Shown here one piece after another: positions 1,694-33,470 of a stretch of DNA of 34,726 bases. The stretch is taken from the NCBI GenBank assembly GCA_002269645.1, contig NIVC01004282.1:1-34726 (forward strand), given 5' to 3'. This stretch comes from Macrostomum lignano. Lineage: Eukaryota. The notes beneath the pieces are model-generated. The model did not search any database. It was not told where the DNA came from and saw nothing but the letters and a program-made list of their open reading frames with translations. The stretch's first letter is position 1. Every line of letters starts with the position of its first letter. A program made the translations under genes and the position numbers.

Positions 1694-1955
1694 TTAATCA
1701 TCGAGCTGGCAAAGCAGAGCGCAGCCTCGCTTCACCCAGTGCGACGGCTTCTCGGTGCAGTTGAGCAGGATTGGCAGCACAAAGTTGGTGCTGTGACCTG
1801 TGGTGGACAAAACGCCTCGCCTCTCGGAGGTCTTGTATACCGGGCAGGTGTACCGATTTGAATTCTCGTCAATCTCTTCTCGTTTCATCGGTCGAAGCCA
1901 GATTACTGGCACGTGATCGTACAGAATCTTTGGCAGCTGCTCGGCTAGGCAATTT
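1694..1955 (-). CDS. DNAH12: Dynein exon 20 (C-terminus, TAA)
   Basis: ttcag|A AAT TGC CTA; reads [13 protein letters not shown]...CQLDD*. Confidence 0.95.
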
Positions 1956-4900
1956 CTGAATTGAATTAGAAGGGTCGGGACCATAGATAGTGTAAAAAGC
2001 TAGAGTGAGGGATCGGGACCATAGACAGTGTAAAAAGCTAGAGTGAGGGATCGGGACCATAGACAGTGTAAAAAAGCTGGACTGGGGGATCGGGACCATA
2101 GACAGTGTAAAAAGCTGGACTGAGGGATCGGGACCATAGACAGTGTAAAAAGCTGGACTAAGGGGTATGGACCATAGATAGTGTAAAAGGCTAGAGTGAG
2201 GGATCGGGACCATAGACAATGTAAAAAGCTGGACTGAGGAGGGGTCGGGACCATAGACAGTGTAAAAAGCTAGATTGAGGGATCGGGACCATAGACAGTG
2301 TAAAAAAGCTGGACTGAGGGATCGGGACCATAGACAGTGTAAAAAGCTAGAGTGAGGGATCGGGACCATAGACAGTGTAAAAAAGCTGGACTGAGGGATC
2401 GGGACCATAGACAGTGTAAAAAGCTGGACTAAGGGGTATGGACCATAGATAGTGTAAAAGGCTAGAGTGAGGGATCGGGACCATAGACAATGTAAAAAGC
2501 TGGACTGAGGAGGGGTCGGGACCATAGACAGTGTAAAAAGCTAGAGTGAGGGATCGGGACCATAGACAGTGTAAAAAAGCTGGACTGAGGGATCGGGACC
2601 ATAGACAGTGTAAAAAGCTGGACTGAGGGATCGGGACCATAGACAGTGTAAAAAGCTGGACTAAGGGGTCGGGACCATAGATAGTGTAAAAGGCTAGAGT
2701 GAGGGATCGGGACCATAGACAATGTAAAAAGCTGGACTGAGGAGGGGTCGGGACCATAGACAGTGTAAAAAGCTAGAGTGAGGGATCGGGACCATAGACA
2801 GTGTAAAAAGCTGGACTGAGGGGGGGGGTCGGGACCATAGACAGTGTAAAAAGCTGGACTAAGGGGTTTGGACCATAGACAGTGTAGTGTGGACAGTTGG
2901 TCTAAAAAATTCTCTGGAAAGATTTTTAAGCGCACAGTATTCAATGGGGTTTTACCATAGACTATTTAAGGACGAGAACAATCCGTGCAGTAAAAATACA
3001 CGAGGGAGATGGGAGCGAGTACTGTAACATATAATCCATCTATAATATATTGTAAGCAACTTATTTTTGACGTCATCTTTATATGCTTCTATCTCAACTT
3101 TTTTTGTCTACTTGATCGCTAAACTACTAGTAAGTACTATCTATGGGTATAAGCTGAAGTTTAATCCTAGATTATTATTACAAAAATCCGGTTGCTGCTA
3201 GAGAACTGTATTAGGTATCGCCTACTAAAGAGTAGCTCGAAGTACGAAGTACGAAAGAAGCCAATATTTTATATTTTGGGCAAATATCAAGCGCACAGAA
3301 CTTCAAACAAGTGTATTTATAGGTGAAGACCAGCTGACGAAGAGTAAAGACTCAGAAAAGCAGTCCTGGCCTTTGAGTTTGGAGTTCTAATCCCGGACCC
3401 CGGTTGTAGAAGATCCTAAACTTTTTTGCAGAGTTTACTTATTGCAACAGACTAAAATTTTGTGATAGAAGCAGTTACTAAAATATTTGATTTATTTTTG
3501 TTATAATCTGCAGCTACTTTCTTTTTTATGGCCATTAAAATCTACTAGCATCTCGGACTCACCTGTCTCGATCCCACCTGGCCCCGTCCAGGTACAGTCC
3601 AATAACGTAGGCGCCATCCTTCGGCGCGGTGGACATGCTGTCCACGGCCAGCACCTGGAAGTCGAAGCCGAGCAAGTCGATGGGATGGTGTACTTCCTAG
3701 CGTAGTTCTGCGTCACACCCGTCAGGAAGGCCTGCGTGAAGAAGAAGCCAGAGATCCAAAACACCGCCGGCTTGTCCTCGTCGTACCACTTCTTGAGGAA
3801 CTTTAGGCGCTCCAGCAGGTCGTTGATGTAGCTGCCCAGCGGCTTGAGGCTCGGGTAGGAGGCGCGCATCCACAGGGCCGGCACCTTGCCCACCGCCAGG
3901 CTGCCGCCGAGGGCCTCGAGGTCGGCGTTCATCACCACCAGACCCTTGATGGCCTTCTCCAGGGACTGCAGCGAGGAGCGGACCGTGCCAACCAGCTTGT
4001 TGAATCGCTCCATCTCCTGGGTGAGCACGGTGTTCATGCTCTCCGTGTACACCACCGGGAACTTGCGAACCGCCGCCTCGAGGTCAAAGTTTGGCGGTAG
4101 CTTCTTCAGAATGTCGGTGGCGATCTCGTTCAGGTAGGAGTCGCTCTGGCCGGCCTTGCTCGATCCCGCCTGACCGAGGGTGAGCAGCACGAGTCGAACA
4201 GGCCGCGCGTCTCCTGCAGCTCCCGGCTGATGTCAACATTCTCGTGCATACCGAACACCTCCGGGTGCTGGTAGGCCGGCAGCTTCTTGATGAACTCCAG
4301 GTAGTCGGCGTAGTCCATCTTGTTGGGGATGTAGTAGTTGCCGGATGGGCTCAGCTTGTACTTCTGCTCGGTGACCACGCCAGGGTTGTAGAAGTCGGCC
4401 AGGATCGTCATGAGGCAGCGCCTGTCGCGGTCGTCGGTGACGCGGCCGCCATAGTTGCACTCGCCAGTCAGGTAGGTGATGGCGTCGTAGGGCACCTGCT
4501 CGTACTCGTTGACGAACATGCGCAGTTGGCGCACGGAGATGCTCAAGTCAGAGTCGTTGAAGCCGTAGGGGATGTTCCAGCCCATCGGGCCGAACTTCCG
4601 GCGCTCCTGCACCAGCGCGTGGAAGAAGCAGAGGCTGTACAGCAGCTTCTCGAACGTGGCCTCTTTGCCGGGGCAGCCGTTGAAGAATGATGGGTCAGAG
4701 ATTGGATCGTTGAGGTACGACTGCAGCAGATTCTGCCGCAGGCCGGTCGGTGGCTCGTTGGTCATCTTGACGCCGTTCTGCAGCACCGTGACTGGGAACT
4801 TCGGACTCGGGTAGCTGGTGAGCCACAGGCGGAAGTCCTGATGCGTGTTCTCCCTGGCCAGCCACTCCTCGCAGATCTTCTCCAGCTCGCCCATCCAGCT

Positions 4901-7900
4901 GACGGCCAGGTGACAGTTCTGCAGCATGATCCAGCTGCCGTCCTCCATGGCCTTCTCAATCTTCCTGGCCGCGATGGGTCCCTGGCCCTGGCCGAGCGAG
5001 ATCGAATCGAACTTGTTACCGCTGAAGCCCATGTCGTCCACGAATTTCAGCAGCGCCATGGTGGGATCCGCGCCCGGCGACAGCACAAAAATCATCGGCA
5101 CGTCGCGGCGCGAGTCCTGATAGGAGCGGCTCAGATCGAACGGCGGCGGCTCCACGAATTTTGGGCCGAGTTTCTCTCTGACGTACTGCGTCACCATTGG
5201 GATGATCTTGTCCGGCCGGATGCAGCGGACCACGATGATGCGCTTGAACTCGTCCAGCTTGGTGTGCCACGGGTCGGGCAGGGTCGCCTCGTGCGGATCT
5301 TTGCTCTCGTAGAACTGCTTCCATTCGGAGATGTGGTCGCAGAAGTGTTGCCTGGAAAATTAACAGAAGTGGCTGTGTGCTCTCCAGGCCTTGCACACCG
5401 GATTTTGACCAGCTGCCCGATTCCATAGGTAAAGATCTTCGTTGGATTACCTGAAGATACGCTCCAGGAACACCTGTTTCCAGCTATACCTGAGTGATCA
5501 GCACACCTGTTTCCAGCTATACCTGAGTGATCAGCACACCTGTTTCCAGCTATACCTGAGTGATCAGCACACCTGTTTCCAGCTATACCTGAGTGATCAG
5601 CACACCTGTTTCCAGCTATACCTGAGTGATCAGCACACCTGTTTCCAGCTATACCTGAGTGATCAGCACACCTGTTTCCAGCTATACCTGAGTGATCAGC
5701 ACACCTGTTTCCAGCTATACCTGAGTGATCAGCACACCTGTTTCCAGCTATACCTGAGTGATCAGCATACACCTGCACGGAGTTACCCGGGTTCACCCGT
5801 TCTCACCTGAATCCCTTGAACGCGGGCAGGTCAGACATGCGGCAGATTTCGTCCCAGCTCTTTTCGGACAGCCAGGACGGGTCCGGATTGGGCAGCTTGT
5901 TCTCCAGTCCGACTCCGCCAGTGAGGAGGAACAGCAGCTCCTTCTCGTCAAGTTCGCCTCGAGCACTGCAAAATGGGTTTTGAGCAATGGCGATGACTAG
6001 AGCAGTTCCAACTGTTCTGGTACTAGTGAATCAACCATATTGATTGCGTGATTGTGTGAATCAAGCTCTGATTTTCTTGCTTTTTCAATCTCTCTACCAA
6101 AGTGCTTGAAGTATACTACTTACAATAGAGCATTATATAGACTGTGAATATTTTTTGTTTACAAAACTTAGGCAATTGTGATATAAAGTGTTTTATACAA
6201 ACTAGCCGATAAATTTGATTGCAAAACAACTGTACCGGTAGGTGACATGAAGCACTGCAATCGGTAATGTGCTTAACAAAACATCCAATTAAAAATAACA
6301 AAAAAGAGCAACAAAAGCTCAGATTAGTCCTCACAGCGCAGTGTTATAGTGGCAGGTTGGATAAGTATAGCATGGACAGTGGCTGGAGCAGCGAAGAGAC
6401 AGAACTATTTTAACTCGGAAGAAGAAGAAGAAGTATTTCAAAATAGTCTAAATTAGCTTGCCAAGCTTCATTAGACCGGGGTTGGGGCTGAACTTACGAC
6501 ATGAGCTGGGTGGTCATTAGGAATGAGAATAGCAGCTTATCGGTGGCAAATAGCGACCGACAGACATTAGTATAGAGCGATATGGTGAAGTGCTCAATCA
6601 GATAGCGGATTCGCTTCTCCAGAATGCGGCTCTTGTTACTGAAATGACGGTGGAAAGCGTTGGCCAGGCGGGCTGGCGCTACTAAGCTACTAATAGTTAG
6701 TTAAATAGCAAATTAATCACTGTTAGTAAGCGTATATTATATACATAATTATTGATTAATAGCCGTGGTTAATTGTTATTAATAATAATAAAATCAATCA
6801 ATGCTAGATTAGCGGGACCGCAATCATATTGCCGAAATCGATTCGGCCTCAGAGCTTTCGTCATCATAATCCATATCTACGAGCTGGGATTATGAACTCG
6901 ATCTCACATCACTAAATTGGTGCAGAGCTTTAATGAGAAAAGCAGCTTGTCCTTGGCGAACAGGGAGCGGCACACATTCTCGTACAGATTGTACTGAAAA
7001 TGGTCCTTCAGGTAGCGAATGCGGCGCTCCAGAATCTTTGACTTGTTGCTGAAAATTATTTTAACTAATTGTTTTAACTTCGTGATGGATTGAATGCACG
7101 ACTTTATTACATATTGTGAGTTAAATTTATGCATCTTTCAGTGACGCGTGCATTTGGGCAAAAGTGATGCAAACGATAAAATTAAATATAAGTTATGCAT
7201 GATGTATGATACTCGTAGTAATACTAAAGCACTGAAATATACATGATAGGCATCGCGTGAGAGAAGTTGACTGATCTGACAGCCAATCAGCTTGAGTGGA
7301 GTGAGGTGGGTGCCCATGAGAGGTAGAAAACGACTAGGCATCATTTTTCCAGCCAATCAGCATCACGTTTGTAGACTAGAACTCTCTAGCCAATATTGTG
7401 TGAGGAAAGGAGGAGCTTCAAAGGAGGCAATAAAATCACCAATATTCTCACCTTTCATTGATGGAGCTGATATAAAGGTTGACAAACCAGATCAGCGAGT
7501 ACTGGTACATCGGATCAATGTTAGGCAGATCCGTGATCGAGAAGAACAGTATCGATGAGTGGTTCGCAATTGGCGCGTAGTCCATGCGGGCCGCATCAAT
7601 TTTCTCTTGAGTTTTCTCTGCCACCTAAATTAAATATCAAATGTGCAGTTAGTATAAAAATTCACTAGCGACATAGGACTTGTGCTGATTTTATCACTAA
7701 TATAATGTATTGATTAGCAATTTCTTAACTTCTAGACTTCCGCAGATAAGTTTAAGATTTAGGGCCATCTTAAACGTGCTATTCAGCTGCATGCTAACCG
7801 TAACCAACTCTGTTTAACCTTTGCAGTAGTGGTGGTGGCGAATGCGCTAGGCCACTAGGCTAGCGACATAGTACAAGTGTACATGCTTGAAAGCACCGCC

Positions 7901-10900
7901 TCACCTTCTGCTTCTTCTGAATGTCGTCGGACAAGATCTTGGAAGAGTCGAGAATCTGGATGGCGCTCTCGTTCTCCAGGATGTTGCCTTCGGCCTCGGC
8001 CAGAGTGGCCAGAATCTTGTCCTCGATCTCTTTCAGCTGGCGCCGGTTCTGCGCAGTCATCTTAATCAGCGACTGCCGCTCCTCCTCCAGGTCCGGCCTA
8101 GCGGGATTGATTTGAATTGGAAAATGCGTTTGAGCCTACTGATAGTAGAATTCACAGTAATCAGCCATAGCTAGCTAAAACAGGTGTGTCTAAACCACCA
8201 CTCACTTCTCCTTAGCAACCACGATGCCAAGCAGCTGGTCCTCCAGACCCTCCGGCGTGATCATGAAGTTCAGAAGGGACACCTTCACGGCGATCTCCGG
8301 TAGGTAGTGCGGGTTCCTCAGCTTTGTGGTGATGAAGAACTTGAAATCTTTCGAGTATTCGATGGTGGTTTCGCCCAGACGGATCATGTCGACTCCACCT
8401 AGAGGGATTCGATCATTTTTAGAGTATAACTAACTGCAATAAATGTTCCTCATTCCTGTGCGTTCCAAAGCAAAGCTATGAAATTAACGATGAAAAAATA
8501 TATTTTGCTCTAAAAGAAATAATTCAATATTAAAGGTGAGTGACTTCTGTGAAAATGGAATTTCAAGGGATGAACGAGTGCACAAAACTTTTACACTCAA
8601 TCTCCAATAGTCTTCACATGCCAAACTTAAGGAATCGTGCCTTGGTGGAATTCTCAAAGCCCTCTATCTCGATCCTTCGGCTCGGTGACACAGCCCTCTA
8701 TCTCGATCCCTCAGCTCGGTGACACAGCCCTCTATCCCATCCCGATCCCTCAGCTCGGTGACACAGCCCTCTATCCCGATCCCTCAGCTCGATGACACAG
8801 CCCCCTATCCCGATCCCTCAGCTCGGTGACACAGCCCTCTATCCCGACTCCATGCATTATAAATTATGATAGTTTATTTAGTAGTTTATATTATCTGTCG
8901 CCAGTGGAATCATGCAGATGCAAGACCGAACACATGCGGACCAAAGAAGCTGCTCATGCACCGCTCATGCACCGGATGCGCAGACAGACGGCCTCATCGT
9001 GCAGCCGTGCAGCTGGTTATTATGTACTTTTTGTAGAGCCGACATGCGAGCTCACCGAGGCCGCGAGTCAGGCTGGAGGCTGACGCTGAGATGTCGTACC
9101 GGCTGCCGCTGCTGGCTCGAGATTCGTCTAATATTTTTTGCCGAGATTAAATTAGCTTTGGTATTCTACGAATAATTCGCTTTGTGCTTGGCTCAGTTTT
9201 ATTGTGGGAACAGTTTTTCTTATAGAGTGGCCCGCTGGGTGTATTCAATCAATATATGCAGTATATGCTCGTACATACGTAACTCTAGTCACACACAAAC
9301 TGTTTGTGAATTGCCGACTCGAAAAAATTGAACTAAACAAAACTAAGGTGACACGGTTTTGTTCGCATGGTAACCAAATATAATTCTATCTGTTGTTATA
9401 ACTGGAAAAATGATCGTCTTACTCTGTCCTCTAGCTGAAATATTCGATAAGTTTGTTATTTTCAATGATTAGTAATGCTGTTATGATTATGAGAGACATG
9501 CATTCCTGACATTACCAATAGATATATTGTCATGCATTATATGGTTTGCTACTGTTTTGTTTTTAATTAGCAAAAATTAGATATTACTATATTATCAAAG
9601 ACAATGGTGGTTTGTCTCAGCTATCGTGCCTGTAGCTTCAATAAACAAAAGCCGGTTCTTTGAACTGTCGCGAGGCAGTGCAGAAAACCTACTGAAATAT
9701 TGTGTCTAAACTCACTCTGCTTGAACGTCTGCTTGAGCAGCACCGGTTCCAGGCTGGGGTCCAGCTCCTCTCCGACATTCTCTAGTAGCAGCGGGTTGCC
9801 GTAGCTGATGGCCATCTCCATCTGGCGCATGTAGTTCGAGTCGCTCAGTTTGATCACGGCGAAGCCTGGCGTCGACTTGTATGTGTTCTTGATCCACTTG
9901 TTGGCCTGGCCTTGCGGATCGATCATGAGCGGCCTAAACGTGTCGATAGTAAGCTTACGTTAAATCACGTGACAGCAGAATCAACTGAGTTCCTTTGGTG
10001 AAGACCAGGGAGTAGCGGCATCCCATCTGGGAGTTGCGGAATCCCATCAATGGACTGGGGGAGTTGCGGAATCCCATCGATGGACTGGGGGAGTTGCGGA
10101 ATCCCATCGATGGACTGGGGGAGTTGCAATGGACATCGATGGACTGGGGGAGTTGCGGCATCCCATCGATGGACTGGGGGAGTTGCGGAATCCCATCGAT
10201 GGACTGGGGGAGTTGCGGCATCCCTTCGATGGACTGGGGGAGTTGCGGAATCCCATCGATGGACTGGGGGAGTTGCGGAATCCCATCGATGGACTGGCGG
10301 AGTTGCGGCATCCCATCGATGGACTGGGGGAGTTGCGGAATCCCATCAATGGACTGGGGGAGTTGCGGCATCCCATCGATGGACTGGGGAGTTGCGGAAT
10401 CCCATCGATGGAATGGGGGAGTTGCGGAATCCCATCGATGGACTGGGGGAGTTGCGGCATCCCATCGATGGACTGGGGGAGTTGCGGCATCCCATCGATG
10501 GACTGGGGGAGTTGCGGAATCCCATCGATGGACTGGGGGAGTTGCGGAATCCCATCAATGGACTGGGGGAGTTGCGGAATCCCATCGATGGACTGGGGGA
10601 GTTGCGGAATCCCATCAATGGACTGGGGGAGTTGCGGCATCCCATCGATGGACTGGGGGAGTTGCGGCATCCCATCGATGGACTGGGGGAGTTGCGGAAT
10701 CCCATCGATGGACTGGGGGAGTTGCGGAATCCCATCGATGGACTGGGGGAGTTGCGGCATCCCATCGATGGACTGGGGGAGTTGCGGAATCCCATCAATG
10801 GACTGGGGGAGTTGCGGCATCCCATCGATGGACTGGGGGAGTTGCGGAATCCCATCGATGGACTGGGGGAGTTGCGGAATCCCATCGATGGACTGGGGGA

Positions 10901-13900
10901 GTTGCGGCATCCCATCGAAGCAACGCTTTTACGCAAAAACCAACGAATTTGTGCGTCTTTGCACTGTCGAGATTCAAAATGGTATATTACAATCGATTGC
11001 TTAGCACTCACCAGCGCCTGGAGTTGGACACAATGACCGAATTGTCAATGGAGAACGCGTCTCTCGGCAGGCCGGCAATGTTCCAGGCCTGGATCTGCAC
11101 GGGATCACCCAGACAGACGGTCAGGGAGAAATTATCCGAACAGGGAATATTCTTTTCTTTGCACAGCTTCACCCACTCGTTGGTGGTCTGGGACCTGTAG
11201 ATCATGGTGAATGGGCCCAGGTAGGCAATAACACCTGCGGATATGAGCACATCGCCAAGCAGGTTGTCGTAGATGCTCTGCAGGTTCTTGGCCGCCTGAT
11301 CCCAGCGGTCCTTCTCCCCTCCAAGGCCGCCGATGAGCTTCTTGGCTCTGTCCAGCTTCTTGGCGCAGAGATCGACCTCCATCTCTAGGCGCGCCTTCTC
11401 ATTCTGCGCGTCCTCCAGCCGCTGCTTCAGCTGGGCCAGCTTGTCCTGCACGGCGCGCAACTCGCCCTGCTTCTGCGCCAGAATCTCCATGTTGCTCTTC
11501 AGCTCAGACTCGGCCTCGGCCAGCTTGGCCTTCTTCGGGGCCACCACCTTGGCGACGCGATCGTAGACCTCCATGGCGAGGATCCACTTGCACAGACCTT
11601 CAGCTGCGGACGATGCACGTGACACCTTGCTGGGCTCGAACTCGGGATTTGGTATGTACTCCTTGCGGATCTTTGTCATCACCGCGACGGGTATGTTGTC
11701 TTTGTCATACTCTTTCAGATAATTCAGGAAATTCATGTCGTTGATCAGCTTCTTGGACGGGCCCCAGTAATCGAGCACCTTTTTGGGTCCGCCTGCCGGG
11801 TCTTGAATCTTGTCGGGCGGCACCTGGCGCATTACGCACACGGCGGCCATCACGATCTTTACGCCTTCGGGAGGATTCTGCATCGTTTTCACGATGGTGA
11901 TATCACTGGGCTTCAGGGTATTCAGCGCCTCCAGGGCGGCCTCAAGAGCTGGCAGGGCCTCAGCCAGGTCCGCTTCGCATTCATCCTTTAACGCACGCGA
12001 GGAGGCCGCCTTCTCGTTAACCATCGCCTCCTCCTTGGTCACCTTGTCCTCCTGCTCGGCAACTACAACCGATTCGTGCTCGATAACTTTCATAAGCTCA
12101 ATGTTCTCAGCGCTGGCCTGCACCAGCTGCGGCTGCAGAGCCTCCAGCTTCTCCTGCATGTCCTTCACTTGCTCACCAGCGAAGGCCAGCTTGTCCAGAC
12201 CATTGACGTAGCGCCGCTTTTGGCGCATCGTTTCCTCCTGTTTGGCATTGATGAGGCCTCGGAAGCTGAGGATAAGCTCTAAATAGGAGGTGGGCGTCAC
12301 GTATGTCTTACGTCCCATCTCCGTCAAAAACTTTTCTGACAGCAGTCGAATGCTGGTGTGGAAATTCTGCACAATCTTCACCACGTCGGTCCTGTGGTCA
12401 TCCTCCATATCGACTGACTCGAAGGACTTCATGGCCACGCGTTCCAGAGCATCTGGTGGCCAGGGCTGGAACCAGTCAATTGTGCAGCAGTTGATCAGGC
12501 TGGGAAACTTCCGTAGCCGATTCCTGAATGCGTCGCCAATAGGCGAGAAGGCGATCACAATGTGCAGGTTCTCTCGCACCCGATTCACGAAGAATGCGTA
12601 CAGGGCGATTGGAGAGAAGTCGGCGTTCTTGTCGCCAGCTTGGGCAAATGGCCGCACGGTCTCCATGATCTCAACCTTCTCGTCGTTGGGGAAAAGGTTG
12701 GGAATTTCTCCCGTGTTTAGCAGATTGTCAATGTCCTCCAGGAAGGTTTCCTCTTTGATCTGCGTGTCGGCCATCAGGAAGACGGTTTTCTTTCCTTCAG
12801 CACCGGCTTTCTTCATCATCTTCTTGACGTCCTCGCGCCACTCGGTCATGCCGTAATTCTTTGAGATTTCCGGCTGGCAGATGATGTAGCCAGCCATTGA
12901 GGTGGCCAGCCGCGTTAGCGACTGTCTACCAGAGCCGCCGACGCCGACAAGAAGGGCGTGACCTCCTGGCGTCCTGAGGATGCGGCAGATTCTTGATAGA
13001 TGCTCTAGTACGTAGCGGAAGATGACCAGGTGCATCTTGTTCTTTTGAATGTTGTTGTACTCGTCCAGAGCCTGCTCGACAATCGGGTACAAATCGTCAA
13101 TGCTCTTTGCTTCTTCGTACACCCGCTCATCAGGCTCAAGATCCGGGTTCATGAAGTCGCCAAAGATCAACGATCTGACGTCTTCCTCGCTGACTGACCC
13201 CTGCCCGGTACCGCCACCGGCCAGATGCTCAAACACGGACTCGAAGCTGTCCTTGAAGTGGTTCTTTACTGAGTCCTGCAGCAGCTTGAATAGCCATTTC
13301 CTGTCCGTGTCGTCTGTTAGACGATCGTAAAAGACGCGCATCACCTCGTGGCACCACAGGCGAGTGAAGACGCGTTTCTCTGTCACCTGCTCGCGCTTAA
13401 TCAGACAGACACCCAGGATGATTCGGCTGAAGTCGCGCAGGTTGAACACGTAGTGACTCTTAGCCGGCGTTGGCAGGAGATTCTTGATAGCTGCCTTGTA
13501 GACCTCCATGGTCGAGTGCACGATGGTACTGCCGATGGCGAGGAAGTCCGATGTGAAGCCTTGCGTCTTCATGTACGTATTCATCAGAGCTGTGAAAATG
13601 CGAATCATTGTGTCATCGTTAAATGGCGTCATTGAGACGATGTTGAAGTGTCGCATGAAGCGCGGCGTGATGTCGTTGCGGCCGCCACCCGGTGGTCCCA
13701 TGGCGGCGATGAAGTAAACATCCTGAAGGATGATCTTGGAAGTGTCCTTCAAGTCGTACCAGTTGCCGTGGTCAAAGTACTGGCGAAGCAGCTCAATGGG
13801 CGGCTGGGCTCCGTACACCTCCTTCTGCGGCATATTGATGTCGTCAATGAAAATGACAGCCTGCTTGTTGATCGGCGGTCCGAAGATTCCCTTGCGGCGC

Positions 13901-16900
13901 CTGTCCAGCTTTGACATGATGACGGTCTGCGTCTGATTGGCGCTTGTCTGAGCACTGAAATTCACGAAATGAGGCACAAATTTGTCCTTTGACAGCTCGT
14001 TCATCATCTTGTCCTGGACGTAGACGGATTTTCCCGTGCCGGTAGGGCCGACAAACATAAGCGGCCGTGATTTCTCAATGCAGAGATCCATGATGAACTT
14101 GTAGCGTGCGGTGTCCATGGTGGGCACCAGGATCTCGCGGATCTTCTTGCCGGCAAACAGATCCGCGCCGCGAATCAGATCGTTCCAGTGGCGCCACTGG
14201 CCTCTGGCCTTGGTCTGCAATGGCAACAAAGGCAGTGCTTGCTCTACTTCCGACTAAGTCAGATTTCTGCTGCTGACCCTATGAAAATGCGTGTGAATTC
14301 TTGAAATAAAGCATTTTCATAAAAAAGATAAAAAAATCTTTCCTCTTTGTGACTGGCTGAAAAAACACATTTATATGAAATTTGACACAAATAAAATCGT
14401 GATTCTAGCCACTGTGACTGTGCCACTTTGGTCATGACAATTAACTTACAACAAGGTTGAGCCTATTAAACTGGAAGTTTGCACATGATAGAAGAAATTG
14501 TTTGTTAGCTTGCGTTATGCTTTGTTAGACAGACTGGCAGAATTGAAGCTTAGTTGTAGCAAGTGCATACCTCGTACATGTAGTCATAGACCATTCCATT
14601 TTCTGGGAACACGGTCTCAATCTTGCCTATCTCCTTTGGTATCGGGTTAGCCTCATTGCGACCACTGATGAGTTCGCGGAAGAACTTGTCGAATTTTTCT
14701 CGACTGTCGACGTCCAGAATGCCGCCGATGGACCACGGGATGGCAAAGAGCCAGGCAGCTACAATCCACGTCTTCAGGTGCTTGTTGTCCTTGGCGTTCT
14801 CGGCGTTGACGTGCTCGTCCATGAGCATGTCGATGAAGAACATGCATGACCGCACCAGATTAGTCTGGCTGCTGTTGATGTACTCTCGGCAGCTCTTGCG
14901 CACAAAGTCCAGGCAAGGATCAATGGCCCACTCCATGAGGTGCGACATCACTTCTTGGCTGCCGTCCTTGATCAGCACCTCGGGGAAGCTTTCGATCCAG
15001 GACTTGACCAACGGGCGCCAGCCCAGAGTGCTGGGCTCGAGGTAAATCATGCCACACCGGCTGACAGTGGCCGGGGACGCCTGCGACAGGTCCATGGTCT
15101 CGAAGATGAGACTCATGACCTTGCTCATCTGGATGATTTCTCCAGACATCAGACACAGCTTCTTGTTGTCGTCTGCAATTAAACAAAAATATTGACAGTG
15201 CCGTTGAATATTTCACATTTTATTGATAAATTGTGCTATCTATTTAATCCAAGCTCACCCAGAACAGTGTTCATGGACTCAATCCACAGCGTATCGATGG
15301 GCCCATCGAAAATGACCCACTTCCGGTCGGGTGTGTCGTTAGAAGCGAATTCTCGGAACGTGTTGGCTGTGATACCGTCGGTCCACTCGTGCGACACCGG
15401 GTCGAACTGGCCAAACAGCTGGCCCATTGTGATGGCTTTGGGATTGATGGTCCGGTACATGACCTTCTCGTAGTCTTCCGAGTAGCCGGCCTCGTTCAAA
15501 TTGGTCATCGTCTCGGCCAGAACATGAAGCACACTCGTCTTTCCACCGAACGGTTCGCCCACCAGCATGAAGCTAAAATAGGAAAGCATTTATTGTGTAC
15601 TGTTTGCTCATACGATAAACAATCAGCAAAAGCATTCACTCGGCAACTCACCCGTGACGTACGATCATCATTTCGTAGGTCTGGATGATTTTCTCGGTAA
15701 AGAAGTCAACACTCTGCAGTTTGTGAGCCTCGCATACGCGACGAATTTCGTCGAGGAAGATCCTGTAGTCCGCTTCGGGCCTCTTAACTCCCGGAAACAA
15801 GTCGCTGATGATGCCCTCAAACAGTGGAATATCGTGCGACAAGAATTTTGGCAAGTTCACATCCAGGATGGAGCGTAGCAGCAGGATGTTCTCATCGTCA
15901 TCTGGAAACTTCAGCTTGAGATTTCCGGCAGCTGAGAGCACAGCCTTGACGGCACGCATTCCGTAGTCGTAGTGGCTCTGCGAACTGAGCAGCTCGGAGC
16001 TCAGTCGGTAAGTGGTAACAATCTTCACGGCCAGGTTTCGAGCGTCCATGAAGCCGAACGAGTAAAGAGAGATCTCTCCGATCATGGCATAGTCTGGCAC
16101 CATCATAGCCACCGGCCGGAACAGCACCTTCAGGTTGTCGGGCAGCTCGGAGCGGCCGGCATATCCGGGGTTCATGGTGATGCACACGTAGCAGTTGGGG
16201 TTGAGCTTGAGCAGGGTGCCCTCGAAGTCGAACTCAGAGGCTTTGCTTCGCACGGCGATGATGATGCTGAGAATCTGCTGCGCCACCACAGACAATACTT
16301 CGAGCTCGATTCGATTGAACTCGTCGAAGCAGGCCCAGGCGCCGCTGGATGCCAGGCCCTTGAAGAACTTCCCCATGGCAATGTAGTCCAGGCCGTCCGA
16401 GCAGTTAAAAACAACACACTGTACAGCCAGAGCCTTCGCCAAATCCTTTGTTGTTTCCGTCTTGCCCGTACCGGCTGGACCCTCGGGAGCGCCATTCAAA
16501 TTGAGGTGGTACGCGCCGATCAGAGTGCGATAGCACCTGTCCGTAAGCGGCGTGATGACAAGACGCGGCGAGTTGCCCAGGTACTCGTAGGCGTACCGAA
16601 CTTTGGCGTTGGTCAGGCGGATGAACACGTTCTCGTCCTCCCAGTAGTAGCGCATCTGCGCCAGCCAATTGAAGTCGTTTTCATCGGACACGCCCTTCTT
16701 CACCATGTCTTCCACCACGTCCCGGGAGTGCACATCGATAACGACCAGCGCACCCAGAGTGATGCGCTGCTGCGCGTTCAGCTTGCCACGAACCAGCACA
16801 ACGATGTCAGATAGCTGGTCGGACAGCTTCTTGTAGTAGTCCTTAAGACCCTGGACACCGGCGCTTAGCGAGTCGTGCACCTCGGCTGTCCAGTAGATCT

Positions 16901-19900
16901 GGGAGACACACAGGACTACCTGTCCAGGCCAGTCACAGACCCACTTCTTTCGGGCCTCAATAGCATAGGCCTATAAAGAGAAAACGGTTGAGGTGACCTT
17001 GCAGTTAATGAAGATTGATTAATCAGCGCACACAAAAACATTTTATGGTTTGCATGCGAAGGGAAGGAGATATGTGATTTTCAATACTGTTATTGATTGA
17101 GTCATTTAACCGACAAAATTATTAGTACGAGTAGAATTTCGTGATTAAAAACAAAAATAGACAGTGACTTGACAATTGATACACTGGGAAACATTTTGGC
17201 GTCTCGGGATGGCACTGGTCAAACATTCAATTTCAAACTTCAGTTCACCAACAACTGAACAAAAACAAGCACGACAAATTGAGAAATTACATGCGTCGTG
17301 TCCGCTGACAAGAGCGACGGATATTTCTGAAACGTTGGCATTCAGTGCGACAATAACTGCATCTCATCGTATTGTATAAAAAGTACCGATCGAACTGTAC
17401 ATCGTGACAGCCTAATAGTTTACCATGCTTAGTGACATATATCGGACGCAACGAATTAAATTTACTCGTACTAGCAAATATGACCAGAGAAAATGCTTAA
17501 GCTATTGATGCTATTGTGTGCCCAATAAAATTAAATAAACAATTTTAAAGCTTAGAAACGTATCAGCTCATCGGCGGGACTAGACGCAAACATGATGTTG
17601 TTGATTCGTTTGTCACACAAGTCCTAAAAACGATTTTACGATGGTTGAGTTGTTGCCGCTCTGACGGAATCTATTATACGAGAATGATCAAACGCTACGA
17701 ATGGAACGGAGATTTGCTCAATTTTTTGTTTAAATAAACTCTAAAAATGGATTAGCTGAGGGAGAGAGAAACAGGACTTACGTCGTAGGACGCAGCGATA
17801 ACATCGCGCATGGACATCAACATGACGTCCTGCACCTGAAGGAGCCACTTTTCAACCGCTCCTCGCGCCTCAGACGTGCTGATGGTCTGGCTAAACTTGA
17901 TCTTCTCTCCTTCGCTCGAATACATCCCGTGAATGTCCAGCGCACTATCGAACTCCAACTTCGCGATGCCCTCAAAGCACTTCTTAAGATGCGGCTGGAC
18001 GCGCAGCGGGTCCTTTGTCTCGGACAGAATCTCCAGCATCTCATCGTTCGACAGGAAGAAAAATCGAGGGAAGAAAAGACGCTTCTTTTCCAGGTAGGAG
18101 TTCAGACCCTTCTGGATCTTGTCCAGCAGATCGTTGGAGTCTTTCAGTTTCTCCAGGAGGCCGGGCATGTCGGTGGCCTTCAGCAGCTTGGGGTCCTTGG
18201 CAGTGTTCTTCATGATGTCGCGCCAGTTGCGATCCACAGTTTGGAACAGGCGGCCCTGTTCCGGCATCTGCTGCATGATGTCCTCAGAGCTGAAGATCGG
18301 CTCTAGGTACAGCCAGTTCGCCTGCACCTTCAGCCACTCGTCGATGGTCTCCTGAATGCGCAGCAGGCGCTCTTCCCACTCTCGGATTTCCTTTTCAAAT
18401 GGCCGGATGAACGGCGAGCCACGCATCGTCTGCGTGCGCATGATCTGGTCGTCGAGCTGGGTTTGAATATCGTCAACACTGGACAGAATGTTGATGCCGG
18501 TCTCGCGGTAGGGGATCAGGGAGAAGCTGATTGGCTCCCAGTCTTCGATCATCTTCTTCATGCCTGAAATGCCGGTATGTGGAATGCGTGTAATAACCAC
18601 GAACTAGAAATTTGATAGAAGCCAAATCTGAACTCACCCTTCTCAAGGCTGTGCTCTTTTGTAGCGGCAGCGGATATCTGGCCGAACTCCTCCATGAAGG
18701 CGTCCAGCTTGAGCCCGAGCACCTTGATTAAAGTTGTTCCAGAATCCGGGGTGATGTCGAATCCGCAGATGCTGGACATTTTTTCCCAGTGACGCTGCCG
18801 GATGCCCGGGTTGCACAGAATTTCGATGACGTTGATCTTCTCCTTGAACTCGCGGATCTTCTCCGTTAGAGTGTTGCAAATGTCCAGTGCAGCGGGCGGC
18901 TTAACTTCCTCTTCATCATCTTTTTCCTCCTCGCCACCCTCACCTTGAGTGTCTTCCTCCAGCTTCTTTCTCTTCTTCTTCTCGCGCTCCCGCTCTTCCT
19001 TTTCGGCCTGCATCTTCTTCAGCCGGTTGTTGAACACCTTGGAGACGCGGAAAATTTCGCGGCTAATTTCATCCACCTCTTCGGCAATGCGCTCGGCATC
19101 CAGGGCGAGGAATTCACCTTTCAGCCACCTGAAGAGAGAGATAAAACATTACGCTAAAGTATTTCCATGGTTCGATAAACACTATTTCATGCACTTACTG
19201 GTTCTCCTTATTCAAGTATCGGAATGTGTTCTTAAAGATGCTAAGGAACGGCTGCATCAGGTTAGTCAAGTCGTCGATATCTGGGAATGGCGTCACCGGG
19301 TACTTGTACAGCTGCTCCTCCTTGTTGATCCACTCGGAGTCGGCCCGAGCGGTGTCCAGGCGCTGCTGAACTTTGTTGACGTCCTGCACGTACTGGCTCA
19401 TGATCTCGAGATCCATCTCGCCGTAGTCGTTGAATTCATCCACTCGGTTGCGGATGCGCTGCAACTCGGCAATTAGCTTCTCCTTGCGCTCAATCAGAAG
19501 CTTCTCACCTTGAGTCTTGGACTCCTCTTGCAGCTGGAAGAGTTATTTGATTGAAGCAAAGTAACTCAATGCGTACTTTAATTTATCATATTCAGCAGCT
19601 ACTTACCGTCTCGTTTTCATCGAAGATTGGCGAGATCCTCTTCGGCCAAGTCAGGACTTCACTGTTCAGCTGGAGATCGTCGTCGTTGAAGATCCAGACG
19701 TCCAGCAAGTACTGCAGGCGGTTTTGTGATTCCTTGATCTTCTCATTCAGCGTCACCATGCCAGTGCTACGAGCTTGCTCCATAAATTTAATCATCTCCA
19801 TGAGCTCCTCGCTGGTCTCCGGTTTCTTCTGAGCTCTGGCCTTGACGTAGTCGAACTGCTGGCAGATTTTTGTGTTCTCAGCACGGTGGTCACGCACCAC

Positions 19901-22140
19901 CCGCTCCAGCAGGCGGTCGGCGTAGCCCTGAGCCACTTCGGCGAGGCCGTTCTTCAGCTCCTCGACGTTCAGCCGGATGAGATCGTAGAACTCTATGGTT
20001 GGATTACGCCGAATGGCGTACGAGATGGCGCGATACTCTTCGATCAGCTCGCAGTACTCGGCGAACGTGTGTTCCTCGGTTAGGAACTTCTCTACTCGAG
20101 AGTTGGCCGTACCGTCGACCAGGTAATCGTACCGCTCGTGGTACGACCTGAGGCTGTTCTCTACGCTTTCAAAGTAGCGCGCAGCAGCGGATTTTAGTTT
20201 GGCTTTGGCCAACTGCACGATGTGCTCCGCCAGCTCCGTCGGGACGTTCACATTCGGCGTGGCTGACAGCTGCGAGCTCACTGTGGGAATCGAGCTTAGG
20301 CTCTTGTTCACCTCATCTACAACCGAGAGTAGGAGGTCCTCGTACACCGCGTACTCTGGATCGACGCTCATTTGGCGATCTTGGAAGGACAGGAACATGT
20401 TGAGCTGCGGCAGCCTGAAGCGCTGCTCCTCATCAAAGAGGAGAACCCACGCATTGACGGTTTCCTCTTTGAGCAGCTTGAGCTGGTTTGACATGAGAGT
20501 GGTTACGCAGCTGTAGAACGGCTCCTGAAGGTCCACACGAAGCACTGAAGTTGTGCGTTCAGAGAAGATCTTCATCACCTCCCGGTACCAGTGGCCGAGT
20601 AATCGCTCTTCCATCTTTTCGCATTCGTAGGTAACATTTGTGCGCAATGTCTCAAACTCCATGGGGCTTTCGGCCTTGTACTCAGCCAAGTCCAGAATTA
20701 TCTGCTGGCCGAGCTCACGCTGGCACAGCTCCAGCAGCTTTGGCATTTGTGGATACAGAATCATCAGCCGGTAAGAAATTTCTCGCTTATTCGCTACGAA
20801 ACTCTCGTGCCACTCCTTTGAGAAATCGAGTCCTCTGAAAATTTTATTGAGTTCGAAATCGCTTACTTAAATTTTAGGCTTCTAGGCTAGGCTTACTTAA
20901 ATTCTCTCAGTGATCAGTTAAATTAAAGTTGATGACCTACACTGGTTCCTCTGACGGTTCCACTAGATCATCGTCCTCCAGGCCAGGGACATCAGGCTTC
21001 TTCAGAGACAGTTGAACTAAAATCGATGTTTCAGCTCGTAAAATTAGATAATCTGCATTGAAAGCAACCCCTTTCAAGCGGGTTTTAGTTTAAAAATTTT
21101 GAATTACTCACCAAGAGATTTCTTCATGCTTGTGTCAAAGTTCTGATTTACTTCAGCCAGCACTTCGTTCAGAAAATCGTCCTTGCCTTCGCGAAGATGT
21201 TCGGCAATCTTGTGCTTTATGTTGACCAGCCATTCCGGCGACATGGGCGGAATCGGGCTGCTTTCAACGCACTTTCGTAGGAATTCGTAGTTTAATCGCA
21301 CTTTTCTGTCATCGCTCATCATCTGAAAAGTAGTTTTTTGCCTAGCTAAAGTTCTATAAGCAAGACAAGTATTTGCAGAGATTGAAAATCATCTCAAGCC
21401 AAAATAAAACACAGTGGAAAGGCGCACCTCCTGTGGATACTCCGGCGGAGTTGGTTTCGACAGATCTTTGTTGTCATACTTCATTTCGTGCTGTGTTTTC
21501 AGCGCCCTCTCGATTCTAATTAAAAATGAGATTAGAGTTAAAATATAATTTTTCAGATATGAAATTTAGATACCCCAAAATGTTTGAGTATAAATTTTTG
21601 ATACTTAACAATAAATTACTGCAAATTGCGTTCAGAGAAAGAATGTTGCAGTATGTACAAAATATACCCTGTTAATATAGAGTAAATTCACAGTTTTAGA
21701 ATCTAATATTTTTGGTGAAATCCAACGTACCATTATTAAGGCCACATCCAATGTTTTAGGTTGCAAGTAAAATACAACTTATAACCAATTAAGCATATAT
21801 ATAGATGTCTAAGTTTCTAAATACATATATGTAAATTTGATAGTTAGATAAATAGTGCAAAATTGAAATGCAGATCAACGATCTAAACAGAAAAGGATCA
21901 AAGTATCGATTAAACACTAAAATTTATCAACTGGGGCAGCAAAAGTCAAGCTTTAACCACCAAATAATGTCACTTACAAGAACTGTTGCAACTGATCTCT
22001 TTTCTTGTCGGCCAGGCGGTAGTTATGCAAATTAAGAGCGGCGAATTCACCCTCTTCAACTCCGGATTTGCTTTTCACATCATGCTTTCCATTAGATCGT
22101 TTCTCCCCCGCGATTGGGGGAGTTTTTCGTTGCTGCTCAT
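1694..22140 (-). CDS. DNAH12: Axonemal inner-arm dynein heavy chain 12 orthologue; 20 coding exons, 11,940 nt assembled (+3 missing bases, about 3,980 aa)
   Basis: All 19 introns are GT-AG with consistent phases. P-loops: GPAGTGKT (AAA1), GEPFGGKT (AAA2), GPTGTGKS (AAA3), GVGGSGRQS (AAA4). Stalk/MTBD, AAA5, AAA6 and the C-terminus [15 protein letters not shown] are present. The N-terminal tail ([40 protein letters not shown]) matches recalled DNAH12 rather than DNAH3/7. Confidence 0.93.
1972..2885. repeat. 38-bp minisatellite, about 24 copies, with 5-7-mer higher-order pattern (dynein intron 19)
   Basis: Unit gggaccatagacagtgtaaaaagctagagtgagggatc and gctggactgagggatc variant; unit starts at 1977 and 2015. 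Confidence 0.95.
3563..5351 (-). CDS. DNAH12: Dynein exon 19 (AAA6, lid, C-terminal domain); contains two -1 frameshifts
   Basis: ttccag|G CAA CAC ... GAC AG|gtgagt. Motifs [24 protein letters not shown] and [10 protein letters not shown]. Frame breaks near 4190 and 3682-3684. Confidence 0.93.
5471..5767. repeat. 33-bp minisatellite, 9 identical copies (dynein intron 18)
   Basis: Unit cacctgtttccagctatacctgagtgatcagca; starts at 5471 and 5504. Confidence 0.97.
5807..5965 (-). CDS. DNAH12: Dynein exon 18
   Basis: tgcag|T GCT CGA ... TTC AG|gtgaga; [22 protein letters not shown]...LPAFKGF. Confidence 0.93.
6498..6638 (-). CDS. DNAH12: Dynein exon 17b: duplicated, candidate mutually exclusive exon
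   Basis: tttcag|T AAC AAG ... ATG TC|gtaagt; 141 bp; [46 protein letters not shown]; same length and phases as 17a. Confidence 0.88.
6908..7048 (-). CDS. DNAH12: Dynein exon 17a
   Basis: tttcag|C AAC AAG ... GTG AT|gtgaga; 141 bp; [46 protein letters not shown]. Confidence 0.92.
7452..7624 (-). CDS. DNAH12: Dynein exon 16 (buttress CC2, AAA5 small domain)
   Basis: tttag|GTG GCA GAG ... GAA AG|gtgaga; [20 protein letters not shown]. Confidence 0.94.
7905..8097 (-). CDS. DNAH12: Dynein exon 15 (buttress/strut)
   Basis: gctag|G CCG GAC ... CAG AAG|gtgagg; PDLEEER...[16 protein letters not shown]. Confidence 0.94.
8206..8398 (-). CDS. DNAH12: Dynein exon 14 (AAA5)
   Basis: tctag|GT GGA GTC ... 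GAG AA|gtgagt; [27 protein letters not shown]. Confidence 0.95.
8659..8848. repeat. 34-bp minisatellite, about 5.5 copies (dynein intron 13)
   Basis: Unit gccctctatc(t/c)cgatccctcagctcggtgacaca. Confidence 0.92.
8911..9047 (-). promoter_or_regulatory. RBFOX-type intronic splicing enhancer cluster (3 UGCAUG + 2 GCAUG)
   Basis: Plus-strand catgca at 8911, 8955 and 8966 and catgc at 8933 and 9043, i.e. (U)GCAUG on the pre-mRNA just downstream of the candidate cassette exon. Confidence 0.55.
9056..9127 (-). CDS. DNAH12: Candidate 72-bp in-frame cassette exon in dynein AAA5
   Basis: tattag|AC GAA TCT ... CTC G|gtgagc; phase 1/1 like intron 13; branch-like gctaat upstream; gives [25 protein letters not shown]. 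Weak polypyrimidine tract. Confidence 0.55.
9716..9933 (-). CDS. DNAH12: Dynein exon 13 (AAA5)
   Basis: tttag|G CCG CTC ... CAG A|gtgagt; [15 protein letters not shown]...LLKQTFKQ. Confidence 0.95.
10015..10918. repeat. 30-bp G-rich minisatellite, about 30 copies (dynein intron 12)
   Basis: Unit gatggactgggggagttgcgg(a/c)atcccatc, containing the palindrome ccatcgatgg. Confidence 0.97.
11012..14214 (-). CDS. DNAH12: Dynein exon 12 (AAA3, AAA4, stalk/MTBD, start of AAA5), 3,203 bp
   Basis: tgcag|ACC AAG ... CGC TG|gtgagt; [25 protein letters not shown]. Confidence 0.97.
14571..15172 (-). CDS. DNAH12: Dynein exon 11 (AAA2 C-terminal part)
   Basis: tgcag|AC GAC AAC ... TAC GAG|gtatgc; [24 protein letters not shown]. 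Confidence 0.95.
15259..15572 (-). CDS. DNAH12: Dynein exon 10 (AAA2 P-loop)
   Basis: tttag|C TTC ATG ... CTG G|gtgagc; [25 protein letters not shown]. Confidence 0.95.
15652..16970 (-). CDS. DNAH12: Dynein exon 9 (AAA1)
   Basis: tatag|GCC TAT ... CAC GG|gtgagt; [38 protein letters not shown]. Confidence 0.97.
17782..18563 (-). CDS. DNAH12: Dynein exon 8 (linker)
   Basis: ttcag|GC ATG AAG ... TAC GAC|gtaagt; [25 protein letters not shown]. Confidence 0.96.
18638..19128 (-). CDS. DNAH12: Dynein exon 7
   Basis: ttcag|G TGG CTG ... AAG G|gtgagt; [19 protein letters not shown]. Confidence 0.95.
19199..19533 (-). CDS. DNAH12: Dynein exon 6
   Basis: tccag|CTG CAA ... AAC CA|gtaagt; [11 protein letters not shown]. 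Confidence 0.93.
19607..20834 (-). CDS. DNAH12: Dynein exon 5 (tail)
   Basis: ttcag|A GGA CTC GAT ... GAG ACG|gtaagt. Confidence 0.93.
20941..21016 (-). CDS. DNAH12: Dynein exon 4
   Basis: tttag|TT CAA CTG ... CCA GT|gtaggt; [24 protein letters not shown]. Confidence 0.85.
21112..21322 (-). CDS. DNAH12: Dynein exon 3
   Basis: ttcag|ATG ATG AGC ... CTT G|gtgagt; [17 protein letters not shown]. Confidence 0.92.
21428..21515 (-). CDS. DNAH12: Dynein exon 2
   Basis: attag|A ATC GAG ... CAG GAG|gtgcgc; PTPPEYPQE. Confidence 0.85.
21978..22140 (-). CDS. DNAH12: Dynein exon 1 (ATG in GCC-ATG context; one -1 frameshift in G5 at 22116-22120)
   Basis: MSSNEKLP(P)IAGEK...[16 protein letters not shown] after restoring one C; donor TT|gtaagt. 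Confidence 0.7.
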
Positions 22141-26230: not shown

Positions 26231-26261
26231 TAAAACACTTTAAAAACACAACAAAACTGCT

Positions 26262-29180: not shown

Positions 29181-29280
29181 ATTTACACAATTTCAAACGT
29201 AAAAGTAAGCGTCATGCCAATTTTAAAGGAGCCACTATAAAGCTAAGGAAATTGTAGCACTAGCTACTTATTGTATGGTG

Positions 29281-29520
29281 GATGCTTACTATTTGGGGAT
29301 GCTTGCTATCTGGGGGATGCTTGCTATCTGGGGGATGCTTGCTATCTGGGGATGCTTGCTATCTGGGGGATGCTTGCTATCTGGGGGATGCTTGCTATCT
29401 GGGGGATGCTTGCTATCCGGGAGGGGGAATGCTTGCTATCTGGGGGATGCTTGCTATCTGGGGATGCTTGCAATCTGGGGGATGCTTGCTATCTGGGGGA
29501 TGCTTGCTGTCTTGGGATGA
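29281..29520. repeat. 17-18-bp minisatellite, about 13 copies
   Basis: Unit atgcttgctatctgggg(g). Confidence 0.95.
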
Positions 29521-30008: not shown

Positions 30009-30473
30009 CTAAATGAACTGTTCCACAATCTCTTCTTCCCGCTGTTCCAAAGTCATGTTTTGGAAGGCTCACAAAGCTAGCTCAATCAGGCAATTGGTAT
30101 ACGATTCTACTGGCTCATTCCTGCCCTGCATCTGGCCTCTAAATTCTTCCCTAAACTCTGCTGAACTGCCAATTCTGCCAAAGCATTCTACAAGTCTATC
30201 CTTAAACACTTCATATTCCAGATCATCTGGGAGGTTCAGACACTGCACTGCTGCAAACGCAGTAGCCAGGTCAAGGTTTGCGAGAAGCTCTTGCTTCTGG
30301 TGATCTTCTTTGATACCCTCAGCTTCACAGCGCTGGTCGAAGGCAGTCAACCAGATCCTGATATCTTGACCTGGCGTGAATTTCTAAATTTTTGCATGCC
30401 TTTGTGGACCTAACTCTAACCCGTTTCTTAGCTCTTCAGCTAGCATCACAATCGCATCATTTGCATTGGCCAT
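30009..30473 (-). pseudogene. Gypsy/Ty3 gag pseudogene (nonsense codons; no pol downstream)
   Basis: MANANDAIVMLAEEL...KI*KFTPGQDIRIWLTAFDQRCEA...FREEFRGQMQGRNEPVESYTNCLIELAL*AFQNMTLEQREEEIVEQFI*; retrotransposon gag/MHR-like QxxxExVxxY. Confidence 0.8.
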
Positions 30474-32983: not shown

Positions 32984-33470
32984 ATATTCAGTATATATGC
33001 GCTACTGCCCTACTTTAAGTAGCGAGCGCAGAGAGCGCGTTTGTTTTTTTTATTATTCATTTTCGGAGGTCAACTTGGATGTGAGAAAATTCGACATTGA
33101 ATTCTGATTAACCCGATTGAGTCTCATTAATTTTATCTTTCATTTGTGTAAATCTGGTCATAAAATCGACTAGTTTCACTTGCTCGTAGAGTCCTACCAA
33201 CTTTATTTATATCCATTGTCTCAATATTTTTCCACATTTTAAGCTACATTATGAAATATTAGAGTCCTGCTTTGACATGTTTGTTATTTAAGCGGAATTT
33301 TATGTTTAAACCGATTTAATCTAATACTTTCCATTCAATTTTAGAGTAGCTCGTACGTTTAGCTTCGTATAAGTCTGTTAAGGCAAAGGGAAATTAATTT
33401 TTTGTATGCATAGAGTTGAGATAGCACTAGATTGCCTCCTGAATTTTCATTTAATCGTTTCTGACTTGCC

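Follow-up and report, generated by a model that had tools for sequence, protein, structure and literature searches.

A question raised by this locus is whether a single dynein heavy-chain gene of the flatworm Macrostomum lignano can supply two alternative motors by exchanging one exon for another. The stretch analysed here (contig NIVC01004282.1 of GenBank assembly GCA_002269645.1, positions 1 to 34,726 and thus 34,726 nucleotides (nt) in all, hereafter the window) carries on its minus strand a gene for the inner-arm heavy chain DNAH12, and a sequence-only reading of it had proposed that one of the introns hides a second 141-bp exon, homologous to its neighbour and a candidate for mutually exclusive use. 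We consider it likely that the two exons, named A and B below, are the M. lignano copies of an ancient two-exon mutually exclusive cluster that arose by tandem duplication in a spiralian ancestor, and that one DNAH12 gene probably yields two slightly different ciliary motors.

The exon pair and its gene

The gene and the segments around the pair are listed below in window coordinates; in splice sites a slash marks the boundary between exon and intron.

1697..21484, minus strand: DNAH12 orthologue (GenBank PAA47942.1, BOX15_Mlig003862g8), about 19 coding exons and about 3900 residues
7452..7624, minus strand: constitutive upstream exon, ending ...AATGAAAG, donor AAG/gtgaga
7049..7451, minus strand: intron upstream of exon A, 403 nt, with CCAAT-like motifs on the plus strand
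6908..7048, minus strand: exon A ('alpha' type), 141 nt, acceptor ttttcag/C, donor GAT/gtgaga
6639..6907, minus strand: A-B intron, 269 nt, AT-rich, with a TACTAAC branch-like site and a small GC hairpin
6498..6638, minus strand: exon B (positional counterpart of the canonical 'beta'), 141 nt, acceptor atttcag/T, donor GTC/gtaagt
5966..6497, minus strand: intron downstream of exon B, 532 nt
5807..5965, minus strand: constitutive downstream exon, acceptor ttttgcag/T

The second exon described by the sequence-only reading, equal to the first in length and phases and bounded by a canonical acceptor and a GTAAGT donor, was reproduced at 6638-6498 with the sites atttcag/T and GTC/gtaagt. Both A, which is coding exon 16 in the GenBank coding model, and B complete a split codon to which the upstream exon contributes two nucleotides (AG/C or AG/T, serine in either case), and both close two nucleotides into a codon that is finished by the exon at 5965-5807. 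Either of them therefore joins in frame to the exons at 7624-7452 and 5965-5807, and the two share one slot between the same constitutive neighbours. A recount returned exactly the figures reported earlier, namely 31 identical residues over 46 full codons (67%), with synonymous differences in 17 of those 31 codons. At the nucleotide level 84/141 positions are identical, with codon positions 1, 2 and 3 matching at 33/46, 35/46 and 16/46, and the Nei-Gojobori method gives proportions of nonsynonymous and synonymous differences (pN and pS) of 0.30 and 0.69, for a ratio of nonsynonymous to synonymous substitution rates (dN/dS) of about 0.2, and silent sites are close to saturated. The likeness stops at the exon borders, as the adjoining 80 nt of intron, upstream and downstream alike, agree between A and B at 25/80 and 23/80 positions, which is the random level. 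In tblastn searches the 47-residue exon A peptide finds exon B with an E-value of 7e-17, and when the whole 3881-residue protein is compared with the window exon B is the sole secondary match (E about 1e-10). The likeness between A and B is real and chance is excluded.

The gene that houses the pair is identified by its sequence as an orthologue of DNAH12 rather than as another heavy chain. We rebuilt its coding sequence from open-frame segments and splice-site scoring, and used the resulting 3881-residue protein as homology query. It matches PAA47942.1 of M. lignano at 99%, and its next-best matches, at 58-69% identity, are DNAH12-named proteins of a nemertean, molluscs, echinoderms, amphioxus, vertebrates and corals; over the full length, identity reaches 62-69% to DNAH12-named proteins across many phyla, versus 49-54% to DNAH3. 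Among solved structures, a peptide spanning the region of the pair matches DNAH12 chains best (9fqr_PW, E 3.4e-64, and 8j07_g1, E 7.3e-64, with matched residues 3128-3278 in both), followed by DNAH7 at 1e-54, and DNAH7, DNAH3 and DNAH1 all rank below the DNAH12 chains. The architecture is that of the DNAH3/7/12 group, with a short tail, six AAA modules, a stalk and a C-terminal domain in about 3900-4000 residues, where the C-terminal domain is recovered after bridging two 1-nt frameshifts. The Pfam domains of the gene comprise DHC_N2, AAA_6, AAA_5, AAA_7, AAA_8, AAA_9, MT, AAA_lid_11 and Dynein_heavy, and the presence of DHC_N2 together with the absence of DHC_N1 (PF08385) is the pattern that a single-headed inner-arm dynein should have.

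The pair in other spiralians

For comparison, the homologous segment was extracted from members of ten protein clusters of full-length DNAH12 relatives. The initial clue was an odd version of the segment in some gastropod proteins, along with two versions in tandem in three mollusc models from outside RefSeq. Of the two forms, 'alpha' follows a pattern that ends approximately in [DE]NVxRSxFAK[DH]K, and the canonical 'beta' reads YLSDHFTYxLYCNVCRSLFEKDKLLFSF. Both occur as RefSeq isoforms in the nemertean Lineus longissimus and in ten mollusc species (Haliotis cracherodii, H. rufescens, Gigantopelta, Magallana gigas, Ostrea, Argopecten, Mizuhopecten, Pecten, Dreissena and Liolophura). Ten isoform pairs from nine species, namely Lineus and the eight molluscs Mizuhopecten, Pecten, Dreissena, Argopecten, Magallana, Gigantopelta, Haliotis cracherodii and Ostrea, match in length, and their 11-19 differing positions all fall within the 47-residue segment; H. 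rufescens and Liolophura feature the same alpha/beta swap, accompanied by a difference at another place in the protein. Each RefSeq isoform of the orthologues carries a single member of the pair, with the sole exception of Saccostrea isoform X3, which contains both, and alpha and beta use is thus mutually exclusive in the database isoforms of other spiralians. Moreover, there are two contigs (11.7 and 12.8 kb) whose open reading frames are uninterrupted and which can only be transcripts; one carries the alpha version only (P0248) and the other the beta version only (P0414). Separately, the Liolophura isoforms X1 and X2 (P0399 and P0247) have a second small alternative region near the N-terminus, at residues 96-104, that is unrelated to the exon pair.

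The genomic arrangement corresponds to that seen in M. lignano. The Lineus longissimus genome holds alpha at 26259-26399 and beta at 26922-27062, each 141 nt long, with alpha as the upstream member and 522 nt between the two; the AG/C entry and the exit phase are as in M. lignano and the donors read TT/gtaagt. The same arrangement is found in Haliotis cracherodii, with alpha at 62047-62187, beta at 62775-62915 and 587 nt between them, and the alpha-then-beta order recurs in the ab initio models of Sinanodonta, Plakobranchus and Nucella as well as in Saccostrea RefSeq isoform X3. The search for both exons in related genomes, which the sequence-only reading had named among its checks, finds the pair intact in Lineus and Haliotis, neither absent nor degenerate. 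In these comparisons the flatworms are represented by M. lignano alone, as the Schistosoma haematobium model turns to junk just before the exon, and the molluscs are represented without the Octopus locus, where the gene spans 432 kb.

Outside the Spiralia, the complete DNAH12 loci of a sea star, an amphioxus and a coral contain one 141-nt copy each, of beta type, with no second copy appearing at very permissive search settings, and the alpha signature was found in none of the non-spiralian proteins fetched. The earlier claim of an old duplication under purifying selection is therefore upheld, in that the same cluster, matched in length, phase and order, stands in nemertean and gastropod genomes, the outgroups are single-copy, and dN/dS is about 0.2. 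As a separate observation, DNAH12 isoforms of crinoids (P0253, P0420-P0423) and of a sea star (P0254) vary by a short insertion directly downstream of the homologous exon (...ANILI[ACQGEATD]KKEMD...), from which it follows that the junction after this exon is also alternatively spliced outside the Spiralia.

Relic, repeat or alternative exon

Public annotations treat the pair in M. lignano in two ways. PAA47942.1 and the two other GenBank copies that reach the region, all of them RNA-derived, contain exon A only and leave exon B inside an intron; the UniProt models A0A1I8J266 and A0A1I8JJN8 run directly from A into B, in tandem. The description of exon B as hidden thus holds for the GenBank annotation but not for the two UniProt/WormBase-type models, which contain it, nor for RefSeq, which annotates the orthologous event in other phyla. 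The GenBank annotation was built from RNA-seq assemblies (StringTie, TACO, plus a de novo transcriptome), and isoforms below 0.75 of the major form were dropped (PMC5730564). As an RNA-derived annotation of this kind keeps the major isoform, exon A is the dominant form in whole-animal RNA, and since lesser isoforms were discarded, the lack of a B isoform in GenBank says little. If the pair is used as we propose, both public gene models of M. lignano are wrong at this point, one by omitting an exon and the other by fusing two alternatives.

Several observations weigh against mutually exclusive use of A and B. All three RNA-derived GenBank copies use A only, the two UniProt models join A and B, and none of the GenBank or UniProt models of M. 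lignano includes exon B without exon A. The RefSeq isoforms of the other spiralians are themselves computed models, with presumed RNA support. Exon B shares about 66% identity with Lineus beta and with the beta consensus (66-67% with its counterparts) and is thereby more diverged than A is from alpha (81%), and its assignment to beta is made mainly by position, the sequence having drifted. Furthermore, none of the known mechanisms that impose exclusion, be it steric hindrance, spliceosome incompatibility or nonsense-mediated decay after a frameshift, was found to apply. At 269 nt the A-B intron is too long for steric exclusion; all splice sites of A and B are GT-AG; and as 141 equals 3 x 47, double inclusion remains in frame and nonsense-mediated decay cannot enforce exclusivity. 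A search of M. lignano and Lineus for inverted repeats that could act through docking/selector RNA pairing, of the type described for Dscam and 14-3-3-zeta, returned nothing convincing: the candidates are short AT-rich arms with 72-92% complementarity, at chance level, and the best ones are broken by indels in other copies of the gene.

Other features of the splice sites and introns are in line with regulation. Weaker splice sites are typical of alternative exons, and when scored with a within-gene matrix both A and B score lower than the gene's constitutive exons, in keeping with regulation. Compared with shuffled sequences, the A-B intron has a somewhat stronger fold (z = -2.46), and it is invariant among the gene copies. 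The region recurs at two more loci of this assembly, with 99.2% and 97.5% identity, as would fit the duplicated chromosome reported for the line that was sequenced (PMC5730564), and exon A and the whole 269-nt A-B intron show zero differences among these three genomic copies (window 6636-7048, L001:16002-16414 and L002:16559-16971). The flanking introns differ by 2-5 events upstream and by 8-15 events downstream; for copy L002, about 6 differences would be expected in the A-B intron from the flanking rate, and 0 are observed. This invariance may reflect regulatory constraint or local gene conversion, and, like the fold, it gives no more than a hint that the intron has regulatory content.

The foremost alternative is that exon B survives in M. 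lignano as a silent relic, in which case the ancestral beta exon would no longer be spliced and only A would be used. The A-only models of all three gene copies would suit such a loss, as would the greater divergence of B from its counterparts and its position on a long branch among beta and single-copy exons in a neighbour-joining tree, and yet we regard it as unlikely. The annotation pipeline would have dropped a minor isoform in any case, and a relic of real age would have decayed like the flanking introns, whereas in exon B the reading frame is open, the length exact, the phase correct and each splice site preserved. Against both A and Lineus beta, its dN/dS is well below 1 with silent sites saturated, and most of its substitutions are conservative. 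All three genomic copies have both exons intact, and among them exon B varies only at 6635 and 6521, both times by a synonymous third-position change, in itself weak evidence that points toward constraint. Taken together, the sequence comparisons strongly confirm the predicted selective constraint on both copies, and exon B would be a retained and constrained alternative exon rather than a relic, which we infer to be used in M. lignano RNA.

Alternatively, A and B might both be included in the mature mRNA, so as to encode a tandem 47-residue repeat as in A0A1I8J266 and A0A1I8JJN8. The reading frame would survive, and both exons are found together not only in these two models but also in several ab initio mollusc models and in Saccostrea RefSeq isoform X3. 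However, mutually exclusive exons are commonly joined by gene predictors, the RNA-derived M. lignano models hold one exon, and a single 47-residue unit is present in all other RefSeq isoforms and in every outgroup DNAH12. A duplicated helix pair would in addition need room in the conserved AAA+ lid region, and we judge co-inclusion to be more improbable than the loss of B. Fused alpha and beta segments occur in DNAH12 models of Sinanodonta, Plakobranchus and Nucella, in the two M. lignano UniProt entries and in one Saccostrea RefSeq isoform (P0251, P0252, P0314, P0367, P0368, P0385); such fusions add a 47-residue repeat, probably spurious, to DNAH12 sequences that are used in alignments.

The origin of the pair was addressed with a neighbour-joining tree of the 47-residue units, in which A joins Lineus alpha in 84% of bootstrap replicates and falls inside the alpha group in 61%, a share that rises to 82% when B may also be a member. 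Independent duplications in the Macrostomum and in the mollusc and nemertean lineages, with a convergent resemblance of A to alpha, are very improbable, for although the exon has only 47 residues, the alpha clade with A is moderately supported, exon B has Ala31 like alpha exons, and dN from A is nearly equal to Lineus alpha (0.154) and to Lineus beta (0.160), alpha lies upstream in all genomes examined, A and Lineus alpha (81% identical) agree over an unbroken run of 27 residues in which the alpha-specific Lys14, Gln18, Glu23 and Ala31 all lie, no more than 4% of replicates unite A with B as sisters, and A/B silent sites are saturated. Because the outgroups are single-copy, alpha is confined to spiralians among the proteins fetched and A groups with Lineus alpha, the duplication is older than the split between flatworms, nemerteans and molluscs and younger than the split of their lineage from deuterostomes and cnidarians, with ecdysozoans outside the sampling.

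We favour a model where the 141-nt DNAH12 exon was duplicated in tandem in the spiralian ancestor, before flatworms, nemerteans and molluscs diverged, and where each mature mRNA would be expected to carry one version only, an exclusivity that we infer for M. lignano. The product would be two inner-arm heavy chains of equal length that differ solely in the 47-residue segment. In M. lignano, exon A (alpha) would be dominant in whole-animal RNA, and exon B, in the beta slot, would probably be a minor form limited to a cell type or stage.

Place in the motor, the surrounding locus and related systems

The sequence-only reading had assigned the exon to helices that follow the buttress, within the small domain or extension of AAA5. 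Pfam boundaries put it between AAA_9, the large domain of AAA5, and the D6 P-loop domain. An AlphaFold model of a 332-residue fragment, of low confidence (mean predicted local distance difference test score, pLDDT, of 62.6, and about 46-52 over most of the exon) and used for secondary structure only, predicts a long helical hairpin that corresponds to the buttress and, further on, two helices that cover the exon. The modelled helices and the domain boundaries thus fit a segment lying between the buttress hairpin and AAA6, in agreement with the first part of the earlier placement; the 'AAA5 small domain' label would follow from published dynein architecture. Within the exon, the first 13 residues are nearly invariant in alpha and beta, and consistent differences between the two forms cluster in its middle, at positions 14, 18, 23, 26, 31, 33, 36 and 38. 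Position 23 is acidic in alpha versus Cys, Thr or Val in beta, and position 31 is Ala in alpha versus Glu in beta. In published dynein mechanics the buttress couples movements of the AAA ring to the microtubule-binding stalk, and it is therefore plausible that the alpha/beta swap would modestly change this coupling or a contact with a neighbour.

As for where the two forms might be used, macrostomid sperm to our knowledge lack axonemes, and for this reason a contrast between sperm flagella and epidermal cilia, which may suit molluscs, is doubtful for M. lignano, where a contrast among epidermal, protonephridial, gut or sensory cilia is more likely. A broader proposal, possible though we lean somewhat against it, is that of a spiralian switch kept for more than half a billion years, whereby one DNAH12 gene would provide two mechanically distinct inner-arm motors through exchange of the helix pair by the buttress, the two serving different cilia or different docking positions in the 96-nm repeat, with the residues at positions 23 and 31 tuning the coupling. 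If true, the different cilia could be, for example, locomotory epidermal or gill cilia as opposed to sperm, protonephridial or sensory ones.

The surrounding locus has further features of its own. The two 1-nt frameshifts bridged above lie at window positions 4190 and 3684 on the minus strand, in the large and otherwise perfectly conserved C-terminal exon 5351-3563, and take the form of TCG/TG where GG is expected and of CCC where CCCC is expected, both in short homopolymers. The first of them sends PAA47942.1 into junk, so that the protein stops after ...RGLFDS. Given the short homopolymers and a PacBio/Canu assembly polished with Pilon, these frameshifts are probably assembly errors rather than signs of a pseudogene. 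The plus strand of the intron that precedes exon A, opposite to the gene, has two copies of a CCAAT-box-like motif, CAGCCAATCAGC, spaced by about 70 nt, with a third copy, TAGCCAATATTG, nearby (7281-7292, 7351-7362 and 7389-7400). Four dynein introns contain minisatellite arrays (1971-2886, 5470-5767, 8658-8847 and 10029-10918) with units of 30-38 nt in up to 30 copies, and one of these intronic arrays is 100% identical. Intergenic tandem arrays lie at 26262-29181, 29276-29519 and 33470-34726, including 127 copies of a 23-nt unit and 34 copies of a 37-nt unit, the latter array running past the window end; this abundance of minisatellites fits the reported content of 15% simple and tandem repeats in the M. 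lignano genome. Finally, a 104-residue open frame with a retrotransposon gag-like look (KFTPGQDIRIWLTAFDQRCEAEG...) at 30072-30383 on the minus strand adjoins tandem repeats upstream of the dynein gene.

Mutually exclusive exons that go back to a tandem duplication are well known. For axonemal dyneins, isoform diversity is usually attributed to duplicated genes rather than to splicing. The sequence-only reading regarded the event as probably undescribed for DNAH12, and our literature searches found no paper describing this exon swap, although automated RefSeq isoforms do record it in molluscs and Lineus. The DNAH12 event is ancient, conserved and without a published description, and the class of phenomenon to which it belongs is familiar. 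A motor-domain exon swap conserved over at least three phyla would amount to a natural paired experiment, with two motors that differ in 47 residues by the buttress, and could show how the buttress-adjacent region tunes dynein mechanics and how cilia within one animal specialise.

The closest counterparts are the RefSeq DNAH12 isoforms (Lineus XP_064633434 versus XP_064633435, Magallana gigas X1 versus X2, and Haliotis cracherodii X2 versus X3), which represent the orthologous event and share with A and B the position, the length of 141 nt, the phases and the upstream location of alpha, with isoform differences confined to the segment. M. lignano departs from them in that neither of its public annotations shows alternative use and in that its exon B is unusually diverged. 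A mutually exclusive exon has been predicted in the motor domain of cytoplasmic dynein DHC1 of Schistosoma mansoni (Pillmann et al. 2011, PMC3228551), and alternative motor-domain forms of some dynein genes, with another mention of the Schistosoma case, are described by Kollmar (2016, PMC5100056). In the passages of the 2011 study that treat it, the S. mansoni exon resembles the present pair as an equal-length tandem exon with split codons at both ends, in a dynein motor domain and predicted by the same criteria; it differs in belonging to cytoplasmic dynein 1 and in being another exon, and deep conservation across phyla is not reported in those passages (PMC3228551).

Regulation of an inner-arm motor by splicing has a precedent in Drosophila Dnah3 (CG17150), for which a cell-type-specific splice isoform has been reported (zur Lage et al. 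2019, PMC6367277). As predicted for the DNAH12 pair, this is a single-headed inner-arm heavy chain varied by splicing, in that case between ciliated cell types, but the variation there involves a 39-bp cassette exon near the C-terminus and no swap of homologous exons. The swap itself is paralleled by the muscle myosin heavy chain clusters of arthropods, where one motor gene likewise generates motor-domain variants by means of long-conserved homologous alternative exons. There, many clusters with several variants each are present and functional tuning has been demonstrated, whereas DNAH12 features one cluster of two exons.

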